Assembly (NCBI RefSeq): GCF_052425735.1
Contig: NC_135761.1
Coordinates: forward strand, 47,368,001 to 47,432,000
Direction of reading: 5' to 3'
Source of the DNA: Oculina patagonica
Lineage: Eukaryota
Length of the DNA: 64,000 bases
In this document: positions 4,768 to 64,000 of the stretch, in pieces
Layout of the letters: the number at the start of each line of letters is the position of its first letter
Numbering within the stretch: position 1 is the stretch's first letter
Translations under genes and position numbers: made by a program
The notes under the pieces: generated by a model
What the model was told of the DNA's origin: nothing
Seen by the model: only the letters and a program-made list of their open reading frames with translations
The model's database searches: none

Positions 4768-7700
4768 ATGGAAGATGCTCTGGTTCGGAATCCAAAAGAG
4801 AAAGCAAGTTTCCTCTCGCTGTTGACTTTCTCGTGGATAAGCAATGTTCTCAAACTCGGAAGCAAACAACCATTGGACGAGAAACACTTGTTTGTAGTCG
4901 AAACTTCATATCAAACAGAAAGATTGGTCGCTGATTTGGAGAGGGAATGGCTGGCAGAAGAAAGACGGTCTGAACAAAACCGAACAAAGCCTCGCCTGTG
5001 GAAGGCCATGATGAGAGTCATTCCCTGCAGAGATTATATCGCAATGGCGTTCATTAGGTTTGGTTACACGATAGCATTGAATGTTTTTCCTTTGCTCATA
5101 TGGTTCTTCTTGAGAAACATTTCTACAGCTTCAGAGATGAGTTACAAGGAAACACTGCCGTTTGTAATCGGCATTTCTCTGGTCGCCATAGCAAGGTCTC
5201 TAGGCTTAACTCATGGGATGTTTAAGGCGGAAATGATGACGACTAGACTGAAAGCTGCGACGATTGGACTTGTGTACAAAAAGGCAAGTAATGTATCTTA
5301 GTCTTTTAAAGTGTATTACAAATGGAAAAGTATTAATTGCACATATTTGTTCGACATGGATATTTCTAAATTTCTGATATTATTATACCGCGCTTCCCTT
5401 AACCAAATGAATAACGAATGCTTAACCAATCTCGTCTTTCATGGAATAATATCTAGCAGAGTATCTTACTCAAGAATAATGCAGAAGGCTGTTTAGAATT
5501 TTTAGTAAGGGTAAAAATATTTATTTGATTTAAAAATTGTTCATTCGGCGGTTACATGTTGTATGACTAGACCAGGGCGTATGGAGAGAGGGCGTTGAAA
5601 CAAGCGTGGTCGCGCGGGAGAGCCTTGATGCAAGGTCCTGGGCACTAACGGGGGAATTTGGCCGAGGTTTCCCTGCCAAACACTACGGCGGACGGAAGCG
5701 GCGGTTCAAATTTCAGCTTAGCAGGTGATTTAGAAGAAGTTCTAAAGTTTGACGTGACTGATGATTTTGAAGAATTACTTGACGTACAAGAGGAGATTAT
5801 GGAAAGCTCGTCAAATACGGAATTTAACCAAGAGGGGGAGAACTTGAAAATGTATTATGCGAGGATTGCAACAAAAAGCTTCAATATTCCAGAAGAGTAT
5901 GAAATTGCGTCAAGGGTGACGGGGAAAACAGACAGAAACTCGACATCTGTTACTACAGCGGCTATACCCTACATCAAGGGCACTGAGACTATTTCGCGGA
6001 TTCTACAACCCTACTATTTTCGTGTAGCTCACATACCTATAACTACGTTACGACATTTACTAACTAACGTTAAAGACAGGGACGAACCTAACGACAGACA
6101 GCGAGCGATTTATAAGATTAAATGCTACGACTGCCAGGCCTCCTACATCGAAGAGACCTGTAGAAACCTGACCACGAGACTGACTGAATACAAAGGAGCG
6201 ACGAGAAATGGTGATGTCAACAATCACATTTCTGAACACCATCGACTTACTAACCACAAAATCGACTGGGACTCTGCTGAATGTTTAAATTACAGTACTA
6301 ACTATTTTCAACGACTGACTTTGGAAAGCTGGTACACAAACTAAGAACAAACGCCTATAAGCAGATGTCAACAACTACCGGCACCTGACAAACGACTTAT
6401 TTACGACTAAAACAGAACCGACAAACGGACCGCTAACAGAACGACTTAAATTTGACTAACAATAGACGGAACATAACGACTTAATTTGACTAACAATAGT
6501 CGGGTCGAAACTGACCAATTACTGTCGAAAAACTTTAAACGAGTCTTACAGCCAATAACATCACGGCTAAACTGACCAATCAACTTCGACGGACCAGACT
6601 TATAGCATCATCGACTGACAACAACGTTTCACTTGACTCTGACTTCCGCTGAGGTTGTTGAAACGTCAGTCGCCAACAATAGTTCTTCTCAGAACTACTC
6701 TCACCCGGACGATCATACTCTACGACCAACGGATTGTATGTTGTTAAACATCTTTATTCGTTAGAAATAGCTTTAAAATGCTACGAAGAACTAAGAAGAA
6801 ATCTTCTTGACATTTGAGGCTGACTGTCACAACGAAACGTCCCAAGAATGTATATATTATGATTGCGTGCAGGATCTCTAATTTGCATAAAAAAACAGAC
6901 ATTGAATTCCTAGGGTCCCTGACAAGCCTCGCAGCGCACGTTCAAATAGGCCATTTACGATCTATTAATATTCTAACTTGGCTGCGAGGCTTGGGGGAAT
7001 AAAACAAAAGAAATGATTTATTCATTCCTGAACCTCGACGTGATATCTTTTGTTTATTCCCCCAAGCCGCGGACCCAAGTTAGAATTTTAATATATCGGA
7101 AATGGCCTATTTTAGCGATGTGACTGCCATGTTTTGAAACAGCCAATCAAAAAAATTGAAATTACTTGACCAGATCTTGCCTTCCGGTTCGTCCACCCGT
7201 GCGTTCTGGGAACGAGACTGGATGACGATTAGATAGGCCATTTCCGAGTTATCCTTTGCCTCTGTTTCAAAACGAGTCTACTTGCGAAACCATTCAAATG
7301 AAAATGAGTTTGATTTGCATGAAAATGGACTTGTTGGTGACACTTAATAATAAAGCTAAGTTCAAGCCTACTTGACAAATACGGTAGTTTTGGGCCTTAA
7401 CAGGGGCAGTCCTAAGACACCGTGACTTCGACGCTGTTACTGATTTTTTATATAATCTAGGGAGAATCGCCATAGAAATATTTTCTTTTGCCGGCGTGAA
7501 GATAACACTCGACTGGGAAAATCTACGCCCATGTAGTATTTGCAGAAACTTGTCCCGAAACATGCCACTCGCTCCTTGCTCATTTAAATTTTAAGTTTCC
7601 TCTGTGAAGAAATCGATGTGGTCATGGTTGCTAACATGATAAGCCTATAACCGAAGAAATTACTGTGAGGCGTTGTCATATATTGGTCAGCGGTTTTGTA

Positions 7701-10700
7701 CGCATGCTCAATAAAGGGCGGACCCTGTTCGTGTTTGGCCGCCATGTTGAAATGTAGTGTTTTGTGGCGTGTGTTTTTATCTGGCCTAATCAGACCTATT
7801 AGAAGCCATCCAAAGGTTTCTCGATATTTAACACTGGCGACGAGGACGGGATTGACTAACTAACAAAGAATGGCGGCAGTTAACATCAAAATTCAAGGAG
7901 TAGCTTCGTTCGATTGCAAAGGAAATTCGTCTACATTGCGACCACATTGGAAAAAATGGCTTCAATCGTTTCAACACTTTTTTGTGGCCAAAGGAGTGGT
8001 GAACGATGCACAAAAGAAGGCTTTGCTTCTTCACACCGCGGGAATTGAGGCATTTTGTCAAAAAAAGTCGTAGTAAGCCACACTATTTTAGAATCATCCT
8101 CAGTCATAACAAATCAATGAAATGAGATACTGTGAATCCTGAGCTACAAAGCCACAGATGGGAACAGCTCGTAAGTTCATATGGGATTCACTCACGCGCT
8201 CTTCCCATCTGTGGCTTTGTAGCTCAGATGGTAAAGCAGTGGTCATGTAACCCGAAAGTCGTGGGTTCCAGTCCCACCTGAGCCACTGAATTTTTTTCAG
8301 TGCCCAGGTTTTACAGTGTCTCATTTCATTTATTTGTTAAGCCACACTATCTTCACACATTAGAGCCATTTTCTGAATAAAATGAATAAGCGACTTACGG
8401 TAAGCTCTTCGGTTATAGGCTTATCATGTTAGCAACCATGGTCACATCAATTTCTTCACAAGGGAGTTGTGCACGAGGAAGATATGACTTTTAAGTAAAA
8501 AAGAAAATTCTGGAACTTTATCAGCTTTTTATACTGACTTTATTTTCCAGATCCTTAATCTTAATAGATGTACTTTACAAGACACCATTTCAGAAAACAC
8601 CATCAACTTGGTTTCCAACGATGCTCAAGCTATCGAAAAGTTAAGTCTCCCCAGTTTTGTATTTCCATTTGCTCCACTGGACCTCGTTATCTCCATGGCT
8701 CTTCTGTGGTATTTATTAGCATGGCAAGCCTTAATAGGAGCTTCTTTCTTTCTTCTTGTTGTGGTGTATGGATCGTTTGCAGCTCATAAGATTGGGAAGG
8801 TTCGCCACCAATCAGCCGCAGAAACTGACAAACGATTGGAAATGATGAAAGAAGTTATTGCAGGAATCCGCGTAGTTAAAATGTACGCCTGGGAATGGAA
8901 TTTCAGGGATCTGGTTGCACAAATAAGGAAGTTAGTACAAATTTTTTATTTAACTGTTAAGCTACATGGCCGCCTTTTTAATCACCGATCGCGAATAGTA
9001 AACGAGGCCAGGCTACGTCGACACTCTCATGTCGACCGGGAAGAAGCGGCATAATTATTACAAACGGTAAAACAGTCAAAAGGCAACGAGATTCAGTATT
9101 CTTAAGCCGAAAGTCGAAATATAAAATGCTATTCCAAGGACAACGCGCACGCATCTAGCTGTATAATGAGGGCCCATTAGCAAATAGCAATCAACAAACG
9201 AATCAGTAGGATTTACGGATTTCCAAAAGCAAGTTGAAAATGAGCCCCAGTTAGAAAATGGCTACTAAAAGACGTTTGTTCGCTTTAGCAAAAAAGCTCC
9301 TCGTAGAAGAGGGGATACTGCTCAGTGCTACAACACGGACAGGTGTTGAGTAAATTGCACAGCTATCATCATATTTAAACAATGTGAATCCAGTGTTTAG
9401 GATAAGCGTTAAGAAAATCCAGAGCGGCTAGATTGAAATATCCTGCCTAGAAATAGTTTTGAGGTTTTGACGCCATTTTAAGTTCTAAAACCGTATTATC
9501 GATATCGCGTATAAAACCAGCGTGTTTGGGGAGAGGTGAATAGATGTTTTATTTAGAGCTCGATAAGTTAATGAAATGTAACAATTTTTCTTTGAACAGA
9601 AAGGAAATCTCCTTGATTCGCATCCGAGGATTCATGATCTCAAGTATCTACGCCTTGTTCTTCACCAGCTCTGCCATGGCAGGATTCGTTTCAGTCACAA
9701 TAATGCTATTTACAAAGCATTCACTAACGTCGTTTAAAATCTTTACGCTAATTTCTATCTTATCTAACATCAAATTCATCGTCACGATTTTTATAGCAGA
9801 AGCATTATACCATATTGCGGATGCGAGAACTGCATGTAATAGGATGCAACGCTTGATAGAAAAGAAAGCTATCTTAACACGTGAAATGGATCACAAAGAT
9901 AAACTGTATCCTTTAGAAGTTTACTTCAGAGGTAGAAGGTATAAACCACAATTCATTAGGACTCAAAGTTTTAGAAATGGAAGACCAGCCTTGGTTAGTG
10001 CTCGGAAACTTAAACAGACATCTCAGCACATCCAACCACAGGCATTTCTTGAGAACGTTTCATGTTTCTGGAGCCAAATGTCAGAACGTCCTGCGTTACG
10101 GAATGCATCATTGGGTGCTACTAATGGTCAACTTATTGGTATAACAGGGCCAGTTGGAAGCGGCAAAACATCTTTGCTGATGTGTATCTTAGGAGAACTT
10201 CCAATCTCTTCTGGGAAAATCTCTTGTATTGGAAAAATAGCTTATATCTCCCAAACGCCTTGGGTCTATTCTGGCACTGTGCGAGAAAACATAGTTTTTG
10301 GTAACCAGTTTGTTGAACAAAAATACAACAAGGTTATCGAGGTCTGTGACTTGCAGAAAGATATAGAACACTTTACAAAACATGATCTAACGGAGATTGG
10401 ACAACGTGGAGTAATCCTCAGTGGTGGTCAGCGTGCACGAGTGAGTCTGGCACGCGCAATCTACTCAGACGCGGACATCTACCTATTGGATGACCCACTC
10501 AGTGCAGTGGATGCTAAAGTCGGCAAACATTTGTTTGAGAGATGCATCAAAGAGTTCCTAGAGGGGAGGATACGTATCCTGGTCACTCATCAGTTACAGT
10601 TTCTGGAACAAACAGACAGCGTTGTTATGCTACGGAATGGCTCCGTTGTTCGTCAAGGAACGTATAGTCGAATTGAAAAGGACAAGCAAGTGGCTTCTTA

Positions 10701-12376
10701 TTTCCTATCTCAAGCAAAACAAGACCTCAATGGCGAGATTGATAGTAACGAGATTTCTTTATTTTCTACTGAAGACACCTTCAAATCGATGAATGCTGCC
10801 AAAGCAGACCGTGACAGGGTGGATCTGAAAGAAGAAGAAGAGGACAGAATGGTTGGAACTGTCAAGTGGTGGTTGTACTGGAAGTATTTTAAAGCTGCAC
10901 TTCCAACAGTTTTGATAATCGGCCTTATTGTGTTCTTTGCTATTGTTCAGGGTAAGCAATAGTTTAAGTACGGGTATTCCCTGAATTTCGAAGATCCACA
11001 TAAAGTAAACATAAAAGATATTAGTTAATCTATTTACATAGCTCTTTTTAATAGAAGTTAGTATAAGTTCTTTTCTTTTTATCATTACATCATTACATTG
11101 GTTATGAGAAAAGAAAGGACGCCACGTTCTAGTGAAAACATCGTAGAAAACGTACATCAAATTGCAAGGAAGTTTTCTTTAAAGCCAGAAGTCCATTTAT
11201 TTCTTCATGTTTAAGTATATCAAATAAACTGGAATTGCGATTGAAGAGAATAGCTAGAGATATGGCACTAACTACTGGGTTGTCCCGAGGAGACTCGTGG
11301 TGAACCATGCGTTAATACCATTTCCATATCTGATAAATGTACTGTTAGGCAACATGGTTCAATTGGATTCCCCCATAGCTGAGTGGTATCCAGCAGGAAC
11401 CTGGCTTCATTGTTTGTGTTTGATGAATTTGACTTGAGCGCACAAGTCACATTTATAAACTTGTACGGAAATTTAGCCTCTTTTAAGCATCGTTATGTTG
11501 GTAAGAGTCGTCCTAAAATAAAAGGACACGACTTCTTCCGCACAAATCATTTAGTTATTTAAGTGTTGGTGTCGCCAAGTGTTATTAATTCGTAACTTTG
11601 AAGAAAGGACACGACTACTTTCACAGAAAGCCATGCGTTATTGATCTGGTAACCAAATTTAGTGTAAACGTTTGTTTTCTGTTTCAGTGTTCTGGATTGC
11701 GCCCTATTGGTGGCTCTCACGCATCTCTGAAATGCCATTGGAGCAACAGAAGAGCCACAAAACGCTTGTGGTGTACGGATCCATTGTGACTGTCTCCTTA
11801 CTTCTTACGATAATATCCTCCTTCTGTTTCTACCTCGCTGCTTTAAAGGCTTCAGAAAACCTCCATGACCAGATGACAAAAGCTACTTTGAAAGCACCGG
11901 TCCTATTCTTTGATACTAACCCAGTTGGTCGCATCTTAAACCGCTTCTCTAAGGATATCGGGAGTATGGACGATATACTTCCAGGACAGTTCCTTTTTGC
12001 CACGCAATTGTGCCTGTACTTTTTCAGTGCTACCATACTTTCAGCGGTGACAAATGTGTGGCTTTTTATCACTTGTACCCCCTTAATAGTCTTGTTTATT
12101 TACCTCGCTAAATATTATTTGAAATCCGCTCGGGAGATAAGACGACTTGAAGCAATAACGTGCAGTCCAGTGTACTCCCTTATTGCTGATACTGTGGCAG
12201 GACTGGAAGTAATTCGCTCATCAGAGATGGAGGATGATTTCCTTCGGAAATTTTACCAGTAAGTAAACTTATGTTAAAAACATATAATTCGTTGTCGCTG
12301 ACTAAAGAATATATAAGCTTTTGCAACTTTAATTTTAGAGACTTGAAGAAGAGAATGGCTAATAAGGAATATAACC

Positions 12377-12441
<65 letters not shown>

Positions 12442-15400
12442 GCTTTCGTAATTGCAGCTTCTTTAACACTGCCACTTTCAAAAGAAGTGACATCTATCTG
12501 TGATAGCGGCTTGTAACCAAGATTCTCTGTTGAAATGATGAGGCATAGGTTTATAACACCATTGAAACTTTATTTAAATGCGAAAATTCCATGTCAGCCA
12601 GATCAGAACTGATTACGCTGTGCGGGTTTTTAGATACCAAGACAAGAACACAGCAGCCCTGATATTATTGAAGGCCTCTACACGTTGGCTTGCTCTTCGA
12701 GGAGATGTCTTAAGTAACGTTCTTGTGACTTCCGTGTCAGCCGGAGCATTATTTGCAACACAAAGTCCAGGTAAGTGCCATCATCTGACAGACCGAGTAT
12801 ATTGGTAGACTTAATACATTGAGACCACCAAGGTTTATTTTATGTTTGTTTAACTGGAAATTGGTGTTAGCTCTGTTTTCGTACTTTTGAAAAGTAACCT
12901 GACCTTTTCCTGTTTTTTATGTACGTAGTCTGTGTATTTAATGTACAGCTTCTTTCCTCAATATTTACCGTCGCTTGCATCTAAGCGTGAACACGAGCCG
13001 CCGAAACATGATCTAATTGGGGATCAAACATGGCATGTTTCGTCATGAAATATTGAAGTTTAGCAGACCGTAACGGCAACTTTCGAGCTCAGAATGCTCG
13101 CCATAACCATTGAGTACAGGCGAAACTTTACACCAGAAGTGATTCAAGTGAACCTGCAAATGCACATCGACACAGATCAAGATCACTTTGTCGGAAGAAG
13201 TCTTCTTACTTTTTATTTCCGACATTTCGAAACGCGGAATTTGTTGAACTTTCGGCGCGAAAGTTGCCGTAACGGTTTGCCAAACTTCAACGTTAAATGA
13301 CGAATCATGCCACGTTTAAATCGAGTAGTGCATGGTCTAGTAACGTGAGACAGCGAAATAGGTTATTTGTGTTTTAGCTTTGGCAGGTATGTCCCTCACC
13401 TTTGCAGCCGAGACATTAGAAGCCTCACAGTATGGCATCCGTGTCGCCTCAGAAACAGAAAATTATATGACCTCAGTAGAAAGAGTGTTCACATACACCG
13501 AAATCGACCCAGAGCCTGGGTACAGCACCGAAACCCTTCCTTCAGAAGAGTGGCCGACAACGGGTACCTTGACACTACGTGACTTGTCATTAGCATATTT
13601 GAAAGGAGCGCCAGCAACTTTGAACAACATAAGCGCCAGTGTCGCTGATAAGGAAAAAGTTGGTGTAGCAGGTCGCACGGGAGCTGGGAAATCGTCTTTA
13701 GTGGCGGCTTTGTTTCGAATGCCAGAACCTGAAGGCGAGGTAATTATATGAGAACTGTTATTTAATATATGGCAAAGCCAGTCTTCTGAGCGTTCTACTT
13801 GGTTCGTTCTTTGTCGGGATTTTGCTAAACGTACCGACAGTTTCTATGGAAACCGTCCAAGCCGTGTACCTTAATGATTCGATTTAGCGCCCTCCTTCCA
13901 ATAAGCGCCCCCTTCCGACCGAATGTGTTTTTGTAAATAAGCGCCCCTATTCCAATAAGCGCCCCCATTCTTATTAGCGCTCCCATTCTTATAAGCACCC
14001 CTATTCTAATAAGTGCCCCTATTGTGGATAACTGGCCCTACTGAAGTCACTGACGTCAACTAGATAAACTCCTGACCGTTCACCGTACAGTTCATGTATA
14101 TATTTACTGTTAAAATGAAGAATTATTTTAAAAGTAACTGAACTTTTGACAATTTCTAACTGTTACAGTTCCTGTTATTATAAGATACATTTGGTTGTTT
14201 CTCAAAAAATTAAATAAGCGTCCTGTCCCGAATAAGCGCCCTGTCTCGAATAAGCGCCCTCCCTTGAGGTGCCAAAAGTAAATAAGCGCCCCGGGCGCTA
14301 AATTGAATCATTACGGTATTTGTTTTTCAAAAGCCTGGAGCAAATGAAAATTTGCAACCAAAACTGCGGAAGGAAATTGTGTTAATACTCTCATTCTTCG
14401 CAAAGAAACCTCCTAAAAGATTGATATTTTACAGAGTTTACAACATGGACCAGGAGGAAAAATATTTACCAACCGACTTTTACTATTCTACAGATCGGGA
14501 AACTTCTTAGACCATTATTCACTTAAAAGTACATTCGCACAATATAACGCTCATTAATAACTTTAACTGTCCTTGATATGCTTCTGGTTTAATACCATAA
14601 CTGAGAGAATTCTCGCACGCTGATTGGGCCCAAAGTTACGGTTAATGAGGGTATAGACCATGAAAGAGACATCAGATCATGCCACGCACACTCGCGGGCC
14701 TTAAATGTGCAAGTTTCGTTTCCATGAATAAAAGCGAATTTCATTTTGTTTTGTTTGAATCAAGTACGCATTTGTTTTCGGAATTTAGGATTGGACTTTT
14801 ACTCAGGTGATTTGTCGAAAGAAAATTTAAAAGACTTTGAATTTTTTGTCAAACTGAGAAGAACGGTGCTAGCGAACCGGTAGCGGACTTAGCGAACTGT
14901 CGACGTTCAGTGAACAAGCGCTAACAAAATCTTCAGAAAGAACAATCATCTTGCTCTCTTTTAGCGATAGGCACACACTCGACGAGAGAATAAAAGGTAA
15001 TTAAAATTGTTAATCTTTGAATTCTTATTCATCTTCTTTTGCATCATTGTCGTTTTAACGTGTCGGGAATTTTTACGTCTGCCCCGGCAAAGTTTCTTCA
15101 CTGACAGGAATCGCTTTTGATAAATACTTGATCGAGTTTGTTATCAGTATAAAACAAATCGACCACATTTTTCCATGTTCTGAGTGGTTCTGATTGGGTA
15201 ACTGTTGTTCTTACCACATTTTGACGTCTTCTGTGATCTAAAAATGAACAGACCCACAGTAAAATGGAATGTATTTGTTTTATACAATAACACAACAGTA
15301 AGTACACTTATATGCCGCTTCCGGTGAACTAAAGTTGTTACGTTTTCGTTTCATGAGAACGTTTTCCGTAACCATGAAGTACAGCTAAACCGATTTATTT

Positions 15401-18274
15401 AACAAAATAACGGAAAATTAAATCATTAACAAAAAACTGACCTTTATTCCATCTGAAAAATTGTCTTAAACAGTAACCTTTAAAAATAGCGTTCAACCGC
15501 AATTCATGGATTTGCCGTGGCGTCGTCCAACTGTTCAGCATCGGACAAAAACTTTCATGCAGATTTCGATAATTTCTCGAATCATTCACTGTCTACTTCA
15601 AACATCGCTAGAAATCGCGGACATTGAAGTCGGCGAATTTTGATGCATCTTACATTAATCGCTCACGAAACTTGGTAATAGCCGCTGATTCGAAAGCCTG
15701 ACTTTGGGCTCATATACATCTACGATGATACACAAAAATGCGGCCTACACAGAGAAATATTTTGTGAAGTAAGAAAACCACTGGTCAAAAATATTCCTGA
15801 TAATAAAACTGGAGCAAAAGATCTTTCAAACGATGGCTTTTGCGGCAAAATTGGAGCAAAGACGGCTGAAATATCGTAGCTCAAAGACAGCGGATTTTGG
15901 GATTTCAACGTGGACTGCCGCCGTGTGTTTACAGTATGCGTTTTTTTGTGGTTTTCTAACGGCAAAGATACAAATGAAATCTAATCGGAAGGAGATGAAA
16001 ATCGTTTGGTGAGTTAGATTCATGTATAGTTTTATCAAATCTGCTTGCACATTTTTTCGATCACATTCAGTTTGCCGATAATCTCTGTTTATAAACTTTG
16101 AGTTTTCGGTTTTCGCCATACATTCCTCCTCTACGCCTTATAATTTTGGTCTCAAATACTGTTCGCAGAAAACGTTCATGAATACAAATGAAATTCGAAG
16201 CGCACTTCAATTCTGTACAATGTTTTCTTAATACACCAGTCTATTGTGTTCCGCTGCAAATTTTACATTTTTAATTTTAAGAAATATTTAATAAAACATT
16301 TCATTCTCCATACATTTTCTTTGTAATCCTTGCGTTCGCTTCTACGGTCAATGTACCGCAGGACATACTATTCGCGGACTCGGAGGTCCGCGATTTCTGG
16401 AGATGCTTGTTTAGCCTAGTTAAACTTTAATGTTTCGAACGGGTAACGATTTTTGGCGGAGTGTTTCTTACTGTAGATTTATAATCAGACTGAACTTTTT
16501 AGTTTTGTTGTCGGGCCCCGCGAGTTGTGAATCACTTTGCCGACAACACTGATTTGGACTATGAACTCTGATCACGCGCGCGAGTCACCATACACTGACG
16601 TTATTTATGCGTCTGTACTCTAATNNNNNNNNNNNNNNNNNNNNNNNNNNNNNNNNNNNNNNNNNNNNNNNNNNNNNNNNNNNNNNNNNNNNNNNNNNNN
16701 NNNNNNNNNNNNNNNNNNNNNNNNNNNNNNNNNNNNNNNNNNNNNNNNNNNNNNNNNNNNNNNNNNNNNNNNNNNNNGTTTACTGGTGGCCCAGTAGTTT
16801 ACAATATGGCCCTCCCTAATTAATTACATATTACATACTTTAATCGGTTATTGTATAAACTCTCATAGACCATAGAAATGACGCCATCGGATAAAATGTC
16901 CAAAACTTTGCAGTGAAACCACTCGCCTAACGGCTCGTGATTCCACTTGAGTTTTGTACATTTTCTGACGTCATTTCTATAGTTAATAAGAGTGTAGACC
17001 ATTGCAAAATGTGGTCGATTGTTAAAAGGAATCAAAAACAGTAAGCGATATCTTGAACACTGCCATTGCGAGTCGGCGTTTATTTCTGATTGAAAAGCAA
17101 GTTAAAAAGTTTAAAAACTCGGCAGAAAACCGCAGAATAACTCAAACCAATCTTTACTTGAAAAGGAAACTACAATTGTTTTCCAGCAGCAAAGAAATAG
17201 TGGTCATTTAGAAGTTTTAATATAAAATGTCCTGTCAACTGAACTGCCACTTTGGAATATGCTTTACATTCAACTGAGCGAGTTTCGCTCAACGAAGACA
17301 AACTTAAATTCACTTCACCGCCTGGATTCTTTTTTGAGCAATTTCTCTTCAACTAGCTGAGAAGACCAAGAATTTGCTTCTCCGTTCAGTCCTTCGACCA
17401 TTTTGTCGTTATAAAGCGCAAAAGCAGTTTTCAATTGCAGATGGAAGCGTCTCGACTCAAATTAAAGGGAGCTTGAAGTGATGCCAGCTTGTGCCAGCCA
17501 GCAAGAAAACGGCGCGAACAGTTGAATGGTCTTCTGTCCTGATTGGCTGGCTTCGTTATTTTCTTGTTTCTGATTGGCCCACGGCAGCAGGCTAAAATAT
17601 ATTTTAGCCCGCTGAATTCTCCATTTTAGCCCGCAAAATACGCCTCAATGCCCGATGAAATGATTATAATATCATTTTGACAAGTTTGTTTATTCTTTAT
17701 ACAGGTTATCATAGATGGTGTGAACATCAAGGATCTAAATCTACAGGCGTCTCGCAGGTCCATGGCCGTAATAACTCAGGATCCTGTCCTCTTTAGCGGC
17801 ACCCTCAGGAAGAACCTGGACCCTTTCTCTTTGTATCAAGATCTTGATCTGTGGCGTGCTTTGGAAGATGTTCAGTTGAAGACCCTGATACAACAACTAC
17901 CTGACCAGCTGGAGTACAAGTTGAGAGAGTCTGGAAACAACTTCAGTGTTGGTGAGCGGCAATTGCTGTGTTTAGCCCGTGCGCTGTTACAAAGAAGCAA
18001 GATTATAATCCTGGATGAAGCCACTGCTAATGTAGATTTCAAGACCGACAGACTGATTCAAGAAGTTATACGCAACAGATTTAAAGATTCCACAGTAGTA
18101 ACCATTGCTCATCGATTGAATACCATCATGGACTATGACAAAGTGTTGGTTATGGAGCAGGGACGAGTTGTTGAATTTGACAAACCTGAAGTTTTGCTTC
18201 AGGATAAGAACGGTGTCTTTGCTCGTCTTGTTCAGACTTATAGTGCGACTGTCTCTAAAGAACATTTTCCATGA
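4768..18274 (+). CDS. ABCC4: ABCC4/MRP4-like ABC exporter, copy A (7 coding exons, 1295 aa)
   Basis: Exons 4768-5283, 8551-8930, 9600-10951, 11688-12258, 12634-12770, 13378-13739 and 17705-18274 total 3888 nt with matching phases. Architecture is TMD1-NBD1-TMD2-NBD2 without TMD0. NBD1 has GPVGSGKT/LSGGQRAR/LLDDPLSAVD; NBD2 has GRTGAGKS/FSVGERQ/ILDEATA; TMD2 has FFDTNPVGRILNRFSKD. An in-frame TGA lies upstream of the ATG. An N gap lies in the last intron. The symbol is family-level, not proven orthology. Confidence 0.92.
5929..6730 (+). mobile_element. Penelope-like element 3' fragment (GIY-YIG endonuclease and pLTR)
   Basis: IPYIKGT...AIYKIKCYDCQASYIEET.RNLTTRLTEY...HHRLTNHKIDWD...RLTLESWY is a decayed GIY-YIG domain. 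A hammerhead-like remnant lies at 6634-6671. Confidence 0.88.
7674..8050 (+). mobile_element. Gypsy LTR retrotransposon 5' fragment (LTR, PBS, start of gag)
   Basis: TG..CA LTR at ~7674-7833; PBS TGGCGACGAGGACGGGATT at 7835 (tRNA-Ser(GCT)-like); gag N-terminus FD...WKKWLQSF..F..AKGV.NDAQKKALLLH.AG. Confidence 0.8.
8087..8337 (+). mobile_element. Foldback tRNA-derived short element with 13-bp flanking direct repeat
   Basis: TAAGCCACACTAT at 8074-8086 and 8338-8350; box A TAGCTCAGATGG and box B-like GGTTCCAGTCC; inverted outer arms. Confidence 0.7.
12379..12441. repeat. (AAT)n microsatellite, about 21 units
   Basis: Direct reading of the sequence. Confidence 0.95.
13869..14316. mobile_element. 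Tc1/mariner-pogo-type MITE with AATAAGCGCCC subterminal repeats
   Basis: TIRs CCTTAATGATTCGATTTAGCGCCC and GGGCGCTAAATTGAATCATTACGG with a TA TSD. The copy B intron (~24652) has the empty site with a single TA. Confidence 0.85.
16625..16777. other. Assembly gap (153 N) in the last intron of copy A
   Basis: Run of N. Confidence 0.99.
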
Positions 18275-23772: not shown

Positions 23773-26700
23773 TCATAAGCTGGTTTGTGGGGAACCTTTT
23801 TCAGCGGCAGCAATGTTAAAAGTCTGAACAAGACGGGAGAAGACGCCATTCTTATTCTGAAGCAAAACTTCAGGTTTGTCAAACTCAACAACTCGTCCCT
23901 GCTCCATAACCAAAACTTTATCATAGTCCATGATGGTGTTCAATCGATGAGCAATGGTTACTACTGTGGAATCTTTAAATCTGTTGCGTATAACTTCTTG
24001 AATCAGTCTGTCGGTCTTGAAATCTACATTAGCAGTGGCTTCATCCAGGATGATAATCTTACTTCTTTGTAACAGCGCACGCGCTAAACAAAGCAATTGG
24101 CGCTCACCAACACTAAAGTTGTTTCCAGACTCTCTCAACTTGTACTCCAGCTGGTCAGGTAGTTGTTGTATCAGGGTCTTCAACTGAACATCTTCCAAAG
24201 CACGCCACAGATCAAGTTCTTGATACAAAGAGAAAGGGTCCAGGTTCTTCCTGAGGGTGCCGCTAAAGAGGACAGGATCCTGAGTTATTACGGCCATGGA
24301 CCTGCGAGACGCCTGTAGATTTAGATCCTTGATATTCACACCATCTATGATAACCTGTATAAAGAATGAAAAAACGTGTCAAATTACTTTCAAAGACAGA
24401 TAAAGTAATTAATGAGCATTATATTGCACGGACTCACTTTCAAGTGAATAATGTTCTATAAGAAGTGTCCCGATCTCTAGGATAATAAAAGTTGGTTGGT
24501 GAATATCCTTCTTCTTCGTCCATGTTGTAAGCTCTGTAAAATATCAATCTCAGTTTTAGGTAGTTTCCTTGCGAAGAATGAGGGTATTTACACATTTTAT
24601 TTTCGCAATTTTAGTTGCAAATTTTGAGTTTGCCGGCTTTTGAAAAACAAATACGCGGCTTTGATTGTTTCCATGGAGACTGTCGGTCAGTATTAGTGTC
24701 ACCAATTAGTGTGTAAAACGCTCAAACGATTGACACTTAAATAAAGTTTACTAATACTACATCCTGACAAAGAAAGAACAAATCAGAACGCTCGAAAGAC
24801 TTGCTTTGCCATATATTAAATAACAGTTCTTATATAATTACCTCGCCTTCAGGTTCTGGCATTCGAAACAAGGCCGACACTAAAGACGATTTCCCAGCTC
24901 CCGTGCGACCTGCAACACCAACTTTTTCCTTATCAGCAACATAGACGCTTATGTTGTTCAAAGTTGCTGGTGCTCCTTTCAAATATGCTAATGACAAGTC
25001 ACGTAATGTCAAGGTACCCGTTGTCGGCCACTCTTCTGAAGGAAGGGTTTTGGTGCTGTACCCAGGCTCTGGGTCGATTTCGGTGTATGTGAACACTCTT
25101 TCTACCGAGGTCATGTAATTTTCTGTTTCTGAGGCGACACGGATGCCATACTGTGATATTTCTAATGTTTCGGCCGCAAAGGTGAGGGACATACCTGCCA
25201 AAGCTAAAACAAGAGTAAACTATTTCTCTGTTTCATGTTATACTATATAAAACTAAACTATGCACTGTTCGATTAAAAAATAATTGAAAAAAATCCTTAG
25301 GACGACGGTTAGTTTATAATTAAATTCATGGTTACTAATAATGGTCAACTATAACAGGAAAACTAGCGAAGAATCTTCACCAGTGGAATTTTTTTTTTGA
25401 TATATCGTACAATCAAGCTGGTCTTCTTTAGGTGATTAATTATGGTGTGTGGCTGCTCTGGTTTATCCAGGCAGGGTCAAAAATAAAATTTTGTTGCCAT
25501 TTTGTTTATATGACACACTGCTGTATTTTACTCAAGACCATTTCATCGTCAGTTGATCATGATCTCTATAAATTACATAAACAATACATTTTGTAATCAT
25601 TGCAGGTCAGTCAGTTACAAGTACAATTACGATAAATATTGACGAAAGTAGCTGTACATTAAATACACAGACTATGTAATTAAAACAGGTATTGGTCAGG
25701 TTACGTTTTAAAAGTACGAATACAAAGCTAACACCAATTTCCAGTTGAACAAGCAAAAAAAAAAAGAAAAAACCTGGGGGGTCTCAATGTATAAAGTCCA
25801 CCAATATACTCGGTCTGTCAGATGATGACACTTACCTGGACTTTGTGTTGCAAATAATGCTCCGGCTGACACAGAGGTTACAAGAAAGTTACTTAAGACG
25901 TCTCCTCGAAGGGCAAGCCAACGTGTAGAGGCCTTCAATAATACCAGGGCTGCTGTGTTCTTGTCTTGATATCTAAAAAACCCTCTTAGCTTAATCAGGT
26001 TATGTGGCTGGTATTGACATTTTCGCATTTTAAAAACGTGTAATGGTGTTATCAATTTATGTCTGAGCAAACCCAGTTATAGACCCATCATTTCAACAGA
26101 GAATCCTGGTTACAAGCCGCAAACTCAAAGAATTCGCACTTCCTTGGTAAAGTTACGGTGTTAAAGTAGTTTCATTTATGACCTCTCTCTTATACCAGTT
26201 AATTGAACCCTATAAGCCCCTCCTTTTAACCAGTCTCTAAAAATAAAGTGGAATAAGCTTAATAAGCCGACAACGAGTTTTTAGTTTTTAATATAAGTAT
26301 ACTTACTGGTAAAATTTCCGAAGGAAATCGTCCTCCATCTCTGATGAGCGAATTACTTCCAACCCTGCCACAGTATCAGCAATAAGGGAGTACACTGGAC
26401 TGCATGTTAGTGCTTCAAGTCGTCTTATCTCCCGAGCGGATTTCAAATAATATTTAGCGAGGTAAATAAAAAATACTGTTAAGGGGGTACAAGTGATAAA
26501 AAGCCACACATTTGTCACCGCTGAAAGTATGGTAGCACTGAGAAAGTACAGGCACGATTGAGTGGCAAAAAGGAACTGTCCTGGAAGTAATGCGTCCATA
26601 CTCCCGATATCCTTAGAGAAGCGATTTAAGATGCGACCAACTGGGTTAGTATCAAAGAATAGAACCGGTGCTTTCATAACGGCTTTTGTCATCTGGTCAT

Positions 26701-29700
26701 GGAGGTTTTCTGAAGCCTTCAAAGCAACGAGGTAGAAACAGAAGGAGGATATTATCGTAAGAAGTAAGGAGACCGTTACAATGGATCCGTACACCACAAG
26801 CGTTGTGTAGCTCTTCTGTTGTTCAAACGGCATCTCAGACATCCGTGAGAGCCACCAATAGGGCGCAATCCAGAACACTGAAAGAGAAAACAAACGTGTA
26901 CATTAGATTTTGTTACCAGACCAATTACACATGGATTTTTGTGAAAGCAGTCGTGTCCTTTTTTTCGACTGAGTTGCGAATTAATAACAGTTGGAGACAC
27001 CAATCTTAAACAACTAAATGGCATGCATTTCTACTAGTGGAGTTCACGGGTCGATAGGGTGGGTGGCTGCTTTAGTGTCTTTTAGGATGACTCTAACCTT
27101 CATAAAAATGCTTGAAAGAGGTTAAATTTACGTACAAGCTTGAATGTGCGCTCAAGTCGAATTATTAGAACAAATGGAAAGCTTTTGAATCCAAGAATAA
27201 GAATAATATAATAATAATTTAATACTTATTCGCGCAAATTAGATATGATATGATCAAATGCGCCTACATCAAGTTAATTTAAAACTTTATTGAACAAGTA
27301 TGTCTTAATTGTTCGTTTAAAAAGATCGTAGCTTATCGATCTTATTCGATGTATTTATTCCACAGTCAGGGGCTGCATTTGAACGATCCCAAGAGTTTGT
27401 CGCGATCGAGGTTATTTGTTTTCTCTAATCTTGATAGTACAAAATAAGAGGGAAGCATAAATGCCGTAAAAGAGAATCAATTTTGTACTCGATACAACCG
27501 GAAGAAGTGAAGACGTTTAAAGTAGGTGATGTGGAATTAGGTGTCTGACTGACAACGGGCCGCACAATTAAAGTGAAGGTACCTGATGGATGCCACTGAG
27601 CTATGGGGGAATCGAATTTAACCTTGTAGCCTGACAGAACATTTATCAGATATAGAAATAGTATTAACACATGCATGGTTCACCGATAGCTCAGTAGTCT
27701 CCGACAACTCAGTAGTTCGAGACAGCAACTAGTATGTTCCTGGGTTCGACTCGCACTGGATATTCAGTATTTTTCATTTCTGAGTAATCTAATTTAAAAG
27801 TATATCTTTACTCGCAACTCTACGTTTATTTGGTGAGGTCTAGAAAGTGATGCAATAAATAGACTCCATGGCTTTAGAGGGGCTACACGAAACCTTTTGG
27901 ATTAGATGTACATTTTTAAAGACGAGTTTAGTAGAACTCAAGGTTTTATAGTTTCTTAACCAGTCTTATGAGAATAAACAAACGAACAAATAAACACACA
28001 CAAATACTAATTAGATGGTGTCACGACTCCTATTTGAATGAATTGTGTTAGTGGTGTAACTAGTATCCTTCATGTGCACTTTGTGTAACTTCGAAATGCA
28101 GGGAATATATAACTGTATTAAAACGTTTGCTTACCCTGTACAATAGCAAAGAAAACAATAAGGCCGATTATCAAAACTGTTGGAAGTGCAGCTTTCAAAT
28201 ACTTCCAGTACAACCACCACTTGACAGTTCCAACCATTCTGTCCTCTTCCTCTTCCTTCAGATCCACCCTGTCACGGTCTTCTTTAGCAGCATTCATCGA
28301 TTTGAATGTATTCTCCGTAAAATATGAAGAAATCTCGTTATTTTTATTCTCACCGTTGAGATCTTGTTTTGCTTGAGAAAGAAAACAGGAAGCCACTTGC
28401 TTGTTCTTTTCTATCCCACTATAAGTTCCTTGACAAACCACGGAGCCGTTCCGCAGCATAACAATGCTGTCTGTTTGTTTAAGAAACTGTAACTGATGAG
28501 TGACCAGAATACGTAACCTCCCCTCTAAGTACTCTTTGATGCATCTTTCAAACAAATGTTTGCCGACTTTGGCATCTACGGCGCTGAGTGGGTCATCCAA
28601 TAAGTAAATGTCCGCATCTGAGTAGATTGCGCGTGCCAGACTCACTCGTGCACGCTGACCACCACTTAGAATCACTCCACGTTGTCCAATCTCAGTAAGG
28701 TCATGTTTTGTAAAGTGTGCTATATCTTTCTGCAAGTCACAGACTTCGATGACCTTGGTGTATTTTTGTTCATCAAATTGGTTACCAAAAACTATGTTCT
28801 CTCGCACAGTGCCAGAATAGACCCAAGGCGTTTGGGAGATATAAGCTACTTTTCCAATACAAGAGATTTTTCCAGAGGAGATTGGAAGTTCTCCTAAGAT
28901 AGTCATTAGCAAAGACGTTTTGCCGCTTCCAACTGGCCCTGTTATGCCAACAAGTTGCCCATTAGTAGCACTCAATGATACATTCCGTAATGCAGGACGA
29001 TCTGAAATTTGGCTCCAAAAACATGAAATGTTCTCGATAAATACCTGTGGTTGGATGTGCTCAGAGGTCTGTTCAAGTTTCCGAGCACTAACCAAGGCCG
29101 GTCTTCCCTTTCTAAAACTTTCAATCCTTATAAATTGTGGTTTATTCCTTCTACCTTTGAAGTGAACATCTAAAGGAGACGGTTTGTCTTTGTGATCCAT
29201 TTTGCGTGTTAAGATCGCTTTCTTTTCTATCAAGCGTTGCATCCTATTGCATGCAGTTCTTGCATCCGCAATAAAGTGTAGTGCTTCTGCTATAAAAACC
29301 GTGACGATGAATTGGATGTTTGATAAGATAGAAATTAGGGTAAAGATTTTTAACGACGTGAGTGGATGTTTTGTAAAAAGCATTACTGTGATTGAAACGA
29401 ATCCTGCCATGGCAGAGCTGGTGAAGAACAAGGCGTAGATACTTGAGATCATGAATCCTCGGATGCGAAACAAGGAGATTTCCTTTCTGTTCAAAAGAAA
29501 ATTGTAACATTTACTTGACTTATCGAGCTCTAAATGAAACATATTTTTACCAATACTTGAACAGCTGGGTTTATGCCTGATAATACCGTTTTTAGAACTT
29601 TAAATTGTGTCAAAACCTCAAAAACTATTTCTAGGCAAGATATTTGAATCTATTTCTGTGGTGTTCCTTAACGCTAACCCTAAACACTCTCTCTCAGCAA

Positions 29701-38225: not shown

Positions 38226-39904
38226 CTGTCGCAGTGATCCTGGCATCCCCCAATTTTAGGCACCCCCGTCCCAAGATCCCTAGTGAATTTGGCATCCCCT
38301 CAGGGGATGCCAAGATCACTAACAGCGTTGAATACAGCAGACTGGGGCAAGTGAAGCAAACCAAAATTCCACTCAAAGACCATTTTGCTTTATCACTTAA
38401 TATATTTAGACTACTGTTACATAACCGGAAGTTGTGTTAAGCTATTGCACCATATGTACCCAGAATGCTTAGCGAATAAAGTGTTGTTCAGCAGATGGGT
38501 ACTTGTTTGGAAGCTATCTATGATATGCTAATTTGGCGACGAGGAACACCACAGCGACGAGAGACCCTACAAGCGTTCTCTGTGTGAGGAAAAAGTGTGT
38601 TTTTGAAGAGTCGGCGGTAGTCGAGTCGTCCACGTGCACACGGAAGGCGGCGTGGCGAAGGAGAGAGACGCAGTGAAAAATGGAGATGTCCAGCGAAACA
38701 CCGAGAAGAAAAGCGAGGGAGGAGCCAACCGCCGGAGAGGAACGAAAGGACTGAAGCCCTGAGAATTGTGCAGCACAAGAGACCCGGAGGAGCGGAGGCC
38801 GGGGAGAAGGGAGGGAGGAGAGACGAGAAGGACAGAGGAAGACAGGGGACAGGAGGGAGAGTAAGGGGAGGGTGGGAAGCCCCCCGGCGGGGGCGGTCTA
38901 GGGGGGGAAGGAGAGCCCTCGCTGGAGGGGAGGGGGGGAGGAGAGCAGAGGAGACGGGGGGCGGGTGCGCGGGGGCCGGGGGGAAAGCGGAGGGGGCGGG
39001 GGAGAAGGGAGGGGGATGGAGACGGGGGCCCTGTGGGGGGAGGTGGGGGGGAGGGGGGGGGGGGCGGGGGGGGGGGGGGGGGGAGGGTGGGGAGGGGCAG
39101 GAGGCAGTGCCGGGGGGGGACGCAACAGGATGGCGAAAGTGTTAGCAATGAAGCTTGTACTTGGAAGCATTTATTGATATGCTACAATCACAAAGCTTTG
39201 TTCATAAATTTAATCGTTCTTAGCAAACAATATTAGCGTCTTTGCAGATATGGAACTATGGAACTAAGGAAAACAAACTACCTATATGGACTAAACCGAA
39301 ATCACAAGGTAAAAGTCATTAAGTTAACCCAGTATTTACTAACCTTAACCTGCAATAAAACCGTTTGCTGATAACAATACAAACAAAAGAGATAAGTTCA
39401 CAGACTCGAGAGGTCAGTTTTCACGCCAAGCGATCGCATTCATATCGGTATTGCGTGACAGTCCTTTGTCAGTTTCTTGATCATGTTCGCATTTGAAATG
39501 TTCATTCACCGAGCAAATTGGAAGCTCTTACAATGCGCTTTTTATGTTTGAAATATTAAAGGTTTAGCGATAAGCACCATGTGCGTGTTAGTATAAGGGA
39601 TTTCGACGCGTGGTTCGGTGTTAACAGGTTTTAGGAATAATTACGCGGACTTGAATCAAACGGTTGTTTCAGTAGCTTTGCGAATATTTGCGAAGTCGTC
39701 AATACTGTTTGCTAAGAACGATTAAATGTATGAAGGCAAAGCTTTCTGATAAAGCAAAATGGTTTTTGAATGGAATTGTGGTTTGCTTCACTTGCCCCAG
39801 TCTGCTTTTAGTGATCTTGGCATCCCCTGAGGGGATGCCAAATTTACTAGGGATCTTGGGACGGGAGTGCCTAAAATTGGGGGATGCCAAGATCACTGCG
39901 ACAG
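38226..39904. mobile_element. Long-TIR non-autonomous DNA transposon inserted in a tRNA-SINE
   Basis: TIRs CTGTCGCAGTGATC.../...GATCACTGCGACAG extend about 170 bp or more, with a probable 2-bp TSD (CG). It splits GTAGCTCAGTTGGTTAGAGCG from CCCAACCGG...GGGTTCGATTCCC. Confidence 0.85.
38397..39186 (+). mobile_element. Degraded or poorly assembled Gypsy-like LTR element remnant
   Basis: LTR-like segment with AATAAA, then PBS-like TGGCGACGAGGA (38534-38545). The GATATGCTA end motif recurs at ~39177-39186, and the remnant is flanked by ATCAC repeats. Confidence 0.45.
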
Positions 39905-53187: not shown

Positions 53188-53419
53188 TGTAAAGAACATT
53201 CACGAACGCTTTATTGCGCAAGAACTTGTTTTGTTTGTATAGATGTAACACGTGATCACCTGAATATAATCGATTGTACATTAGACTTTGACCAGTCCAT
53301 TAGCGAAGCGAAGACGAGTACACGATATCGAGTTCGAAACGAAGTTTTATGTTGTAAATAGGGACGAAATCGCGAATTAAACGGAAATTATTCAAATCAC
53401 AAACTCGAAGTTTATTATA
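53188..53419 (+). repeat. 5' LTR of BEL/Pao element (232 bp)
   Basis: Direct repeat of 60074-60304; by eye it differs by a single 1-bp indel (TTCGAAAC vs TTCAAAC). Confidence 0.96.
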
Positions 53420-53437
53420 TGGCGCCCAACGTGGGGC
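53420..53437 (+). other. Primer-binding site, tRNA-Lys(CTT) type
   Basis: TGGCGCCCAACGTGGGGC directly abuts the 5' LTR and is the known tRNA-Lys1,2 PBS sequence. Confidence 0.88.
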
Positions 53438-53459
53438 AGTGTTAGCGATACAAACGAAT

Positions 53460-56141: not shown

Positions 56142-56150
56142 AAGCAAAAT

Positions 56151-61065: not shown

Positions 61066-64000
61066 TTATGGAAAACCATTTTCAGCGGCAGTCATGTTAT
61101 AATTCTGAACAAGACGAGCGAAGACTCCATTCTTATTCTGAAGCAAAACTTCAGGTTTGTCAAACTCAACCACTCGTCCCTGCTCCATAACCAACACTTT
61201 ATCATAGTCCATGATGGTGTTCAATCGATGAGCAATGGTTACTACTGTGGAATCGTTAAATCTGTTACGTATAACTTCTTGAATCAGTCTGTCGGTCTTG
61301 AAATCCACATTAGCAGTGGCTTCATCCAGGATGATGATCTTACTTCTTTGTAACAGCGCACGCGCTAAACAAAGCAATTGGCGCTCGCCAACACTGAAGT
61401 TGTTTCCAGACTCTCTCAACTTGTACTCCAGCTGGTCAGGTAATTGTTGTACCAGGGACTTTAACTGAACATCTTCCAAAGCACGCCACAGATCAAGATC
61501 TTGATATAAAGAGAATGGGTCCAGGTTCCTCCTGAGAGTGCCGCTAAAGAGGACAGGATCCTGAGTTATCACGGACATGGACCTGCGAGACGCCTGCAGA
61601 TTAAGATCCTTGATTGTCACACCGTCTATGATAACCTGTATAATAAAAGAGCAAACGCGTCAATTTGGTAATAAAGACATATCTTTGCAATGACAGTTAA
61701 TTAAAGTTATTAATGAGCATTACATTGTGCGAATGCACATACAAGTAAATAATGGTCAAAGAAGTTTCCCGATCTATAGAATAATAAAAGTCGGTTAGTA
61801 GATATTCTTCGTTCTTGTCCATGATGTAAGCTCTGCAAAATATCTTTCTTAAATTTCGTTTCTTTGCGAAGAATAAGAGTATAATAACACATAATTAATA
61901 TTGCACATAAATAACAGTTCTTATATAATTACCTCGCCTTCAGGTTCTTGCATTCGAAAGAAAGCCGCCACTAAAGAAGATTTCCCAGCTCCGGTGCGAC
62001 CTGCTACACCAACTTTTTCCTTATCACCAACACAGACGCTTATGTTCTTTAAAGTTGCTGGCGCTCCTTTTAAATATGTTAATGACAAGTCACGTAATGT
62101 CAAGGCGCCCGTTGTAGGCCACTCGGCAGGAGGAAGGGTTTCGGTGCTGTACCCAGGCTCTGGGTCGATTTCGGTGTATGTAAACACTCTTTCTACAGAG
62201 GTCATATAATTTTCTGTTTCCGAGGCGGCACGGATGCCATACTGTGAGGCTTCTAATGTCTCGGCTGCAAAGGTGAGGGACATCCCTGCCAAAGCTAAAA
62301 CAAAAATGAACTCAAGCTCATTCTTTGTTTCATGTTACTATATGAAATCAGGCTTTGCAATTGCTCTACTTGATTTGAAAAAAATTAGACGAGAGAAATC
62401 CATTAGGACGGCAGCTAGTTTTTAATCTTAAATTATGGTTAATAACAACAGCCAGCTACAACAAGAAAAGCGTCAAGGAAAAACACTCGATTAGTAAAAA
62501 GCGTTTCGGATATTTCATACAAGACCGAGCTGGTCTTCGTCGGTTAACTAATCATCATGATGGTGTTTGACTGGTCTGCCCACTTCCAAGAAGACAAAAC
62601 TTTACTTTTTACCGCCAGTTCACACACATACGCAAAGCCATTCCATTTTCAGTTGATCCTGTTCTCTCAGTTTGAATACACACTTCAGGTACCATGAATA
62701 CATTTTACAAAAACATTTTGTTTCGTAATCGTTGCAGGTCAGTCAGTTAGAAGTACAATTACGATAATTGTTAACGAAAGGAGCTGTACATTTAATAGAC
62801 AGACTTCGTAATTAAAAAGCAGAAAAAGGTCAAGCTACTTTTTAAAAGGACAAAATCAGAGCTGATATCAATTTCCAGTTGAACAAGCATAAAATAGCAC
62901 TGGGTGATCTCAATGTATAAAGTCCACCAATATACTCAGTCTGTCAGATAATGACACTTACCTGGACTTTGTGTTACAAATAATGCTCCAGCTGACACAG
63001 AAGTCACAAGAAAGTTAGTTAAGAGGTCTGCTCGAAGGGCAAGCCAACGTGTAGAGGCCTTCAATAATATCAGGGCTGCCGTGTTCTTGTCTTGATATCT
63101 AAAAAAACCCACTCAGCTTAATCATGATCTGGCTGACATGGACATTTTCGCATTTTAAAAACGCTGTAATGGCGTATAAATAGATGTCTGAACAAACACA
63201 GTTATAGTCCCAACAGGGAATTCGTGTTAGAAGCCGCAATCACAGCTACAGTTCAATCTCTGTTATATGGCCACCGAAGGTACTGAGCAAAGTGTCCGTA
63301 TTAGAGAGGTTTCCTTATATTACTGAGGTCACCACGGTCACCTCTCTAATATGGTATTCTCTCTATTACGGACAATCTCTGATGTGCCAACAAAGTTCTC
63401 ATATAATCCCTCTAGCAAAACCCTCTTTAATATGGACCCTCTCTAATATGGACAACGGACACTAAATTTCGGCCCCAGGCGAGTTTCACTGTTTATTATG
63501 GACTCCGGTGATCAGGCGATGATATTTTTTGTGTCCGTAATGTAATTTTTCTGTTTGTGGTTTGAAAAACAGCAAAGTATCCGAGACATTTTCGGAATTG
63601 TGCTTAATGTTGATTTTTTACCTGCAGAATTGCTATGCGTACATGTAGCAGATGTAAAATTTATTACCTTCCTGATAAACATTGTAACTCGATGCTGCTT
63701 TAAATGCAGTTAAAAGAGGAATAAGGGCCTCGGTTTAGTTAATTAATACTTTAAGCTTTTAAGTCAAAATGGTTAAGTTAAGTGTTAAAGTAGTTTCATT
63801 TATGACCTCTTTCTTAAACCGGTTATTGAACCTTATTTTTATAATTCTATAAAAAAGTAAAGTTGTATAACCATATATAATTTTTTAGTCAGCGACGGTT
63901 TAACATAAGTATACTTACTGGTAAAAGTTTCGAAGGAAATCGTCCTCCATCTCTGAAGAGCGAATTAATTCCAATCCTGCCACAGTATCAGCAATGAGGG
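61066..64000 (-). CDS. ABCC4: ABCC4/MRP4-like ABC exporter, copy D (3' part; continues beyond the window)
   Basis: Exons >64000-63919, 63098-62962, 62294-61933 and 61635-61066 match exons 4-7 of the other copies in phase, and the three complete exons match in length (137/362/570 bp). Confidence 0.9.
63248..63480. mobile_element. Tc1/mariner-type MITE fragments
   Basis: TACAGTTCAATCTCTG start and repeated CTCTCTAATATGGA motifs. It is not present in the same intron of the other copies. Confidence 0.5.

Follow-up and report, generated by a model that had tools for sequence, protein, structure and literature searches.

Invertebrates commonly show lineage-specific expansions of ABCC or MRP-type exporters, which are believed to widen the range of both chemical defence and metabolite export. 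The closest known relative of the proteins considered here, human and bovine MRP4 (ABCC4), has been resolved by cryo-electron microscopy (cryo-EM; e.g. 8bjf and 8sx7), which shows R362 binding the sulfate of dehydroepiandrosterone sulfate (DHEA-S) and, in the outward state, stacking on F324. Comparison of MRP1 with MRP4 attributes their overlapping substrates to a conserved, positively charged P-pocket, with variation elsewhere in the pocket setting specificity (bioRxiv 10.1101/2022.12.12.520055). Multi-copy genes of the ABCC4 class, in which many amino-acid differences are fixed, are already on record for Acropora. Here we analyse a tandem array of genes for predicted MRP4-like, ATP-driven export pumps in the coral Oculina patagonica, part of which lies in a 64,000-nucleotide stretch of contig NC_135761.1 (positions 47,368,001 to 47,432,000; assembly GCF_052425735.1), hereafter the window. 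A whole-genome search together with 80 kb of added flank shows that the array, which spans ~121 kb, comprises seven copies, against the four listed in the initial annotation of the window: Z, Y, A, B, C and D are intact, and E is degraded. The reading that we favour, at a probability of roughly 0.55, is that the copies share their engine and the anchor for the substrate's anionic group and differ on the hydrophobic, second-anion side of the substrate pocket, with a resulting change in substrate range; functional divergence among the copies is plausible but unproven.

The family identity of the genes is evident from their domain structure. In gene A, Pfam finds two ABC_membrane domains (exons 2 and 4) and two ABC_tran domains (exons 3 and 6-7), giving the order transmembrane domain 1 (TMD1), nucleotide-binding domain 1 (NBD1), TMD2 and NBD2 in a continuous frame of 1295 residues over seven exons. 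As in MRP4 there is no TMD0: residue 7 of A aligns to MRP4 residue 10, residue 6 aligns to CFTR residue 2, and in each of the six intact copies exon 1 as modelled starts at the first ATG. NBD1 carries an aspartate after Walker B with the motifs LLDDPLSAVD and LSGGQ, and NBD2 carries the catalytic glutamate with ILDEATANVD and FSVGERQ; MRP4 likewise has the aspartate and LSGGQ in NBD1 and a glutamate with FSVGxRQ in NBD2. Such asymmetry, with an NBD1 that is without the catalytic glutamate and an NBD2 with a degenerate signature, is typical of ABCC proteins. When the exons of gene A were compared with all solved chains (HMMER/phmmer), MRP4 chains were the top match for exons 2, 3, 4 and 6; exon 1 matched CFTR best, and exon 5, which is too short to score, gave chance-level matches only. 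We classify the genes as putative exporters of the ABCC type, short MRPs lacking TMD0 (MRP4-like), for which efflux of organic anions is predicted.

The relationship to vertebrate ABCC4 is not one of one-to-one orthology. The coral protein is ~38% identical to a vertebrate ABCC4 representative, and its gene, unlike that of MRP4, sits in a tandem array within a genome of 529 Mb that holds at least 95 exon-3-like matches of ABC type, mostly ABCC-like; the matches lie on contigs C1-C14, a number that would fit the 14 chromosomes usual in stony corals. In an exon-3 tree built with ~100 further relatives from corals, Y, A, B, C and D group together to the exclusion of the rest (support 0.96), and Z, alone among the copies, pairs with a sequence from another coral. 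Because of the number of exon-3 matches and this lineage-specific clade, we refer to the genes as MRP4-like paralogues and not as ABCC4 orthologues. The named relatives are a 'multidrug resistance-associated protein 4-like' of Orbicella faveolata and proteins of Desmophyllum pertusum and Porites evermanni, with 65-78% identity over exon 3. These stony-coral proteins have a consensus in transmembrane helix 6 (TM6) near that of Y, C and D, and several of them share contigs, so that tandem arrays exist in other corals too; they differ from the present copies in that Y/A/B/C/D form a separate clade, that A, B and E have Y or H in place of R369, and that B has Q in place of K357. The array is, in our judgement, a lineage-specific transporter expansion of an ordinary kind.

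The initial annotation of the window had singled out TM6 as a place where the copies differ and had noted a QYGIR motif in all four of them. A six-frame motif scan recovers the three TM6 strings and the four QYGIR motifs that it listed, exactly or within a few bases of where it had put them (Table 1), and QYGIR, in TM12, is identical in all six intact copies. Its by-eye alignment, which set K/Q/R of A/B/C on MRP4 R362 and YH/HF/RY on E374-R375, is borne out by phmmer, which lays residues 16-105 of the exon-3 frame of A on residues 301-390 of MRP4 chain 8sx7_A without a gap. In A, K357 is equivalent to R362, F358 to L363, I362 to L367, F363 to F368, Y369 to E374 and H370 to R375; across A/B/C the residues at these six positions are K/Q/R, F/F/M, I/V/I, F throughout, Y/H/R and H/F/Y. 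The exon 6 alignment sets QYGIR on QWCVR of MRP4, so that Q1003, Y1004 and R1007 of A correspond to Q994, W995 and R998. The E374/R375 region, which had been taken to affect substrate handling, fares less well, as neither residue is named as a contact in the four MRP4 cryo-EM papers searched; moreover, the conserved lower-TM6 arginine of the coral family lies at the E374 position, one residue before MRP4 R375. The equivalents of R362, L363 and L367, which do vary among the copies, face the pocket and not lipid, since these residues contact substrate directly in MRP4. TM6 nevertheless stands out only moderately and is not the main site of divergence: in a comparison of A, B and C, 29% of its positions vs 42% in TM3 and 36% in TM1 are variable, and the segments at residues 145-155 (TM2) and 202-212 (TM3) of A exceed it.

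The divergence of the copies is concentrated at pocket positions of TMD1. Substrate contacts were taken from the MRP4 cryo-EM papers, namely H152, H153, F156, Q160, F211, F324, R362, L363, L367 and F368 in TMD1 (K106 was added later) and D842, Q845, Q849, T856, R946, M990, G991, M992, Q994, W995 and R998 in TMD2, and were transferred by HMMER alignments, in which residue numbers of A are lower than those of MRP4 by 5 in TMD1 and higher by 11 in TM7-11 and by 9 in TM12. The TM3 mapping comes from an ungapped HMMER alignment to MRP4 180-303. The TM2 register is an ungapped extension of the offset of 5 and is the least secure part of the mapping; it is supported by the closest full-length relatives and by the CFTR alignment. 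An alternative alignment by MAFFT, which set TM2 alongside 68 distant representatives, was rejected because gaps were scattered through the helix. Among the six intact copies, 9 of the 10 TMD1 contacts are variable vs 124 of the 286 other TMD1 sites (43%; Fisher p = 0.004). With K106 included the count is 9/11 vs 124/285 (p = 0.013), and with the TM6 positions left out it is 6/6 vs 107/250 (p = 0.007), so that the enrichment is robust to dropping the positions that had prompted the idea. The TMD2 contacts show no significant enrichment (3/11 variable vs 66/299, p = 0.46).

An unbiased scan of the same six copies in 11-residue windows points to TM3 and TM2. The window with the most change in the folded domains, and second overall after the C-terminal tail, is the TM3 patch, with 21 extra amino-acid states vs 7 silent; the TM2 patch has 19 vs 7, and lower TM6 (residues 366-376) lies clearly behind both. 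Residue by residue, the anion-binding side of the pocket (R946, Q994, R998 and an aromatic at W995, which is tyrosine in all copies) is invariant in five of the six copies, the exception being Z with glycine at R946, and F368 and F324 (tyrosine in D) are likewise kept. H152, H153, F156, F211, R362, L363, L367, D842 and Q849 are replaced or variable; of these, H152, H153, F156, F211, D842 and Q849 are, with the tyrosine at W995, points of difference between the coral copies and MRP4. The conserved P-pocket and divergent H-pocket that distinguish MRP1 from MRP4 thus recur among recent coral duplicates which, unlike those anciently separated members of the family, lie in a single array and are 82-90% identical to A over exon 3 (73% for Z).

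Measured against silent change, the three patches evolve two to three times faster than the rest of the protein, and not faster than neutral. By maximum likelihood (ML, GY94 model), the ratio of nonsynonymous to synonymous rates (omega) is 0.53 for the TM2, TM3 and TM6 patches together, as compared with 0.27 for the rest of TMD1, 0.17 for TMD2, 0.18 for NBD1 and 0.17 for NBD2; pooled pN/pS gives 0.57, 0.27, 0.17, 0.19 and 0.16 in the same order. Taken singly, the patches have pN/pS of 0.52 (TM2), 0.74 (TM3) and 0.48 (TM6). Pairwise omega values above 1 do occur (~6 for the TM3 patch in A-D and ~1.4 for TM6 in A-B), and we discounted them as signs of positive selection because they rest on a handful of changes.

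The most likely reading of these patterns is that the copies would export overlapping, non-identical sets of amphipathic organic anions. Each copy keeps the same engine, two NBDs with the usual ABCC asymmetry, as well as the part of the pocket contributed by TMD2, where MRP4 holds the substrate's anionic group through R946, Q994, R998 and the aromatic at W995. Divergence falls mostly on the TMD1 side, in TM2, TM3 and TM6, which in MRP4 packs on the hydrophobic body of the substrate and forms a second anion site at R362. A and B would have moved furthest, with the loss of basic TM6 residues. Gene conversion holds the 3' halves, NBD2 especially, alike. Variation in the pocket of this kind is a common evolutionary route for such gene families.

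Several observations weigh against this reading. Omega is below 1 in every partition, so that the ML analysis of the six copies shows no positive selection, and the excess of nonsynonymous over silent change at pocket codons is not significant (p = 0.12); six sequences with a mosaic history give little power for site-wise tests, and relaxed constraint fits the numbers as well as adaptive divergence does. The MRP4 mutants L363A, H152A and K106A retain wild-type methotrexate resistance, so that these positions tolerate change. The contact list derives from a vertebrate protein that is, as noted above, distant in sequence, with TM2 mapped by ungapped extension, and the facing of the variable sites is judged through published MRP4 contacts, a list that names neither E374 nor R375, the equivalents of 369 and 370. 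Positions 358, 359 and 370 are among the most variable of TM5-6 across the coral relatives, and the differences between copies at these three sites are therefore unremarkable. The suggestion in the initial annotation that the copies specialise for different substrates accordingly stands in part: the enrichment at TMD1 contacts speaks for it, and the absence of a signal of positive selection does not.

The main rival explanation is neutral or relaxed drift at tolerant positions of a polyspecific pocket, the copies being redundant, functionally equivalent and kept for dosage or for differences in expression. We regard it as possible and clearly less probable than a divergence in substrate range. 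The raised patch omega that stays below 1, the tolerance of the MRP4 mutants and the general variability of 358, 359 and 370 are all what drift would leave behind, as is copy E, which has already decayed. What drift explains poorly is that A and B have lost charge at 357 and 369, residues conserved in ~84-92% of coral relatives, that six copies retain intact frames of 1272-1299 residues and all of their splice sites, and that this pocket hardly varies on its TMD2 side, which would not be expected if it simply tolerated substitutions.

Gene conversion bears on how the near-identity of the NBDs is to be read. Between Z and the other copies, synonymous divergence (dS) is ~1.0 in TM5-6, 0.6-0.7 in NBD1 and 0.24 in NBD2, and divergence at four-fold sites is 0.57 in TM5-6 and 0.19 in NBD2; the TMD1 half and NBD2 differ at four-fold sites with p = 0.001-0.005. 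The segments also disagree in their trees: the sister of A is B in TMD1 (bootstrap 99) and Y in TMD2 (96). Approximately unbiased (AU) tests reject, on the TMD1 data, each tree from the three remaining segments (p = 0.004-0.005) and, on the data of NBD1 and of TMD2, the tree of TMD1 (p = 0.04). From the uneven silent divergence and the switching of segment trees it follows that the copies are mosaics shaped by gene conversion; its homogenising effect is strongest in the 3' part, NBD2 especially. The initial annotation had described the NBDs as almost invariant. NBD2 is indeed nearly unchanged, with 8 (A-B), 9 (A-C), 11 (B-C) and 13-20 (the three pairs with D) nonsynonymous differences per 255 codons; part of this sameness is due to gene conversion, however, as silent divergence there is about three-fold lower than in TM5-6. 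For the A-C pair, nonsynonymous divergence (dN) is ~6.5-fold and dS ~3.3-fold higher in TM5-6 than in NBD2, which on a log scale makes the contrast between TMD and NBD roughly half age and half constraint. Gene conversion thus exaggerates that contrast, a further point against reading the copies as specialised. That the contrast arises mainly in this way, with homogenised 3' halves and a TMD1 that escapes with older divergence, so that age and not selection is responsible, is nonetheless unlikely, since it accounts neither for the clustering at pocket positions within TMD1 nor for the two- to three-fold higher patch omega, a ratio that takes silent change into account from the start; gene conversion does contribute to the contrast, without being a full alternative. 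More generally, invariant NBDs in tandem arrays can be partly a product of concerted evolution and not of constraint alone.

Two TM6 positions are conserved in the coral family. Position 357 is K in 79 of ~86 other coral relatives and position 369 is R in 84 of ~100; B carries Q357 and H369, A carries Y369, and the decayed copy E carries H369. That the A/B lineage has lost charge at 357/369 gives the most specific clue to a possible change in substrate handling. A bolder proposal, which we think improbable, is that the A/B/E lineage has been neofunctionalised: with K357 (Q in B) and R369 (Y in A, H in B and E) lost and with the rapid evolution of the TM2 and TM3 patches, its cargo would have shifted from doubly anchored organic anions to less anionic or neutral compounds, conversion preserving the ATPase engine and TMD1 being protected. 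If true, this would be a recent, datable substrate-class switch within one tandem array.

The array can be regarded as a compact natural experiment, in which six near-identical pumps run on one engine, have an anion-binding half that hardly differs among five of them, and diverge mostly in three short patches of the pocket. It is therefore convenient for testing which pocket residues set the substrate range of MRP4-type exporters, and it leaves the general understanding of these proteins unchanged. Expansions of MRP-type genes in corals are candidates for roles in symbiont traffic and stress responses.

Gene A is transcribed and spliced. RNA-type contigs from four public runs cover its exons and leave its introns almost empty; spliced contigs contain the predicted joints 8930/9600, 10951/11688, 12258/12634 and 12770/13378, and the loose ends of other contigs are consistent with the junctions between exons 1 and 2 and between exons 6 and 7. 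Across TM6, a contig of one run (X1) spans 9670-9855 and a contig of another (X2) spans 9600-9855, each with one differing letter, and the sole difference listed in both runs is at 9708, outside TM6. Of 12 translated contig differences in exon 3, 9 are silent, as are most of the other exonic differences in the four runs. A single X1 contig (8638-8660) departs from this pattern, with K202Q, S207G, V209E and a silent change, all in a span of eight codons in the TM3 patch; it hints that this patch is also variable between close relatives or alleles, and it may derive from an allele, a sister species or a close paralogue. Two intronic stretches of gene A, 12916-13283 and 13836-14000, reach contig depths of hundreds to thousands in all four runs, which suggests abundant transcribed repeats.

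The layout of the array is given in Table 1. Z and Y lie upstream of A, the four copies of the window run A, B, C, D, and E lies downstream. Gene A was modelled by tblastn with distant full-length relatives and by reading of the splice sites, and the six intact copies all have open frames and keep every splice site.

Table 1. Features of the MRP4-like array, in window coordinates (negative values and values above 64000 lie in the flanks).
Feature	Position	Strand	Remarks
Gene A, ABCC4/MRP4-like, 1295 aa	4768..18274	+	seven exons
Gene A exons	4768-5283, 8551-8930, 9600-10951, 11688-12258, 12634-12770, 13378-13739, 17705-18274 (stop included)	+	
TM2 hypervariable patch of A, residues 145-155	5200..5232	+	MRP4 150-160 (H152, H153, F156, Q160)
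TM3 hypervariable patch of A, residues 202-212	8638..8670	+	MRP4 207-217 (F211)
TM6 core of A, residues 355-373	9766-9822	+	six-frame motif scan
QYGIR of A	13428-13442	+	
Gene B, 1299 aa	23773..32422	-	exon lengths and splice sites as in A, except C-terminus
Gene B exons	31907-32422, 29855-30234, 28135-29486, 26307-26877, 25836-25972, 24842-25203, 23773-24354	-	
TM6 of B	29264-29320	-	motif scan
QYGIR of B	25139-25153		
Gene C, 1295 aa	42632..50878	-	exon lengths identical to A
Gene C exons	50363-50878, 49682-50061, 46324-47675, 45048-45618, 44663-44799, 43570-43931, 42632-43201	-	
TM6 of C	47453-47509	-	motif scan
QYGIR of C	43867-43881		
Gene D, 3' part in window	61066..64000	-	exon 7 61066-61635, exon 6 61933-62294, exon 5 62962-63098, exon 4 end from 63919; gene continues to 68823, intact, 1295 aa
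QYGIR of D	62230-62244		
Copy Y	-8670 to -457	+	intact
Copy Z	-29630 to -20363	+	intact
Copy E	79427-91295	+	degraded

Intron 1 of gene A has a GC donor (AAG|GCAAGT, 5284-5285), and the remaining introns are GT-AG; this GC-AG intron is conserved in all six intact copies. A GT donor at 5288 was considered for the same intron and rejected, as use of the GC donor at 5284 preserves the reading frame, is shared by the six copies and agrees with a contig loose end at 8549. Likewise rejected was an exon-6 acceptor at 13386, which would shorten the loop between TM11 and TM12 by 3 more residues; the joints seen in RNA use 13377/13378. Copy Y has an in-frame deletion of 23 codons between TM6 and NBD1. 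Copy E has frameshifts in exons 1, 3 and 6 and a broken exon 7, and is without residues ~592-747, which comprise the linker and the last part of NBD1; in TM6 it resembles B, with further changes that include F363L. The C-terminus of copy B is four residues longer, ending in -QTSL (23773-23800), and in all copies no stretch of the protein varies more than its final 15 residues, with 10 of the 15 sites differing among A, B and C. A run of 153 N lies inside intron 6 of gene A (16625-16777) and leaves the coding sequence untouched.

Two further features occupy the spacers between genes. Between C and D, 53358-60031 on the plus strand holds three long open frames of 661, 387 and 931 residues, which resemble an inserted retrotransposon. 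The stretch 38500-39230, in the B-C spacer, is a G+C-rich island (0.49 vs ~0.39); both of its strands carry long open frames rich in proline and glycine, and it looks like low-complexity sequence.

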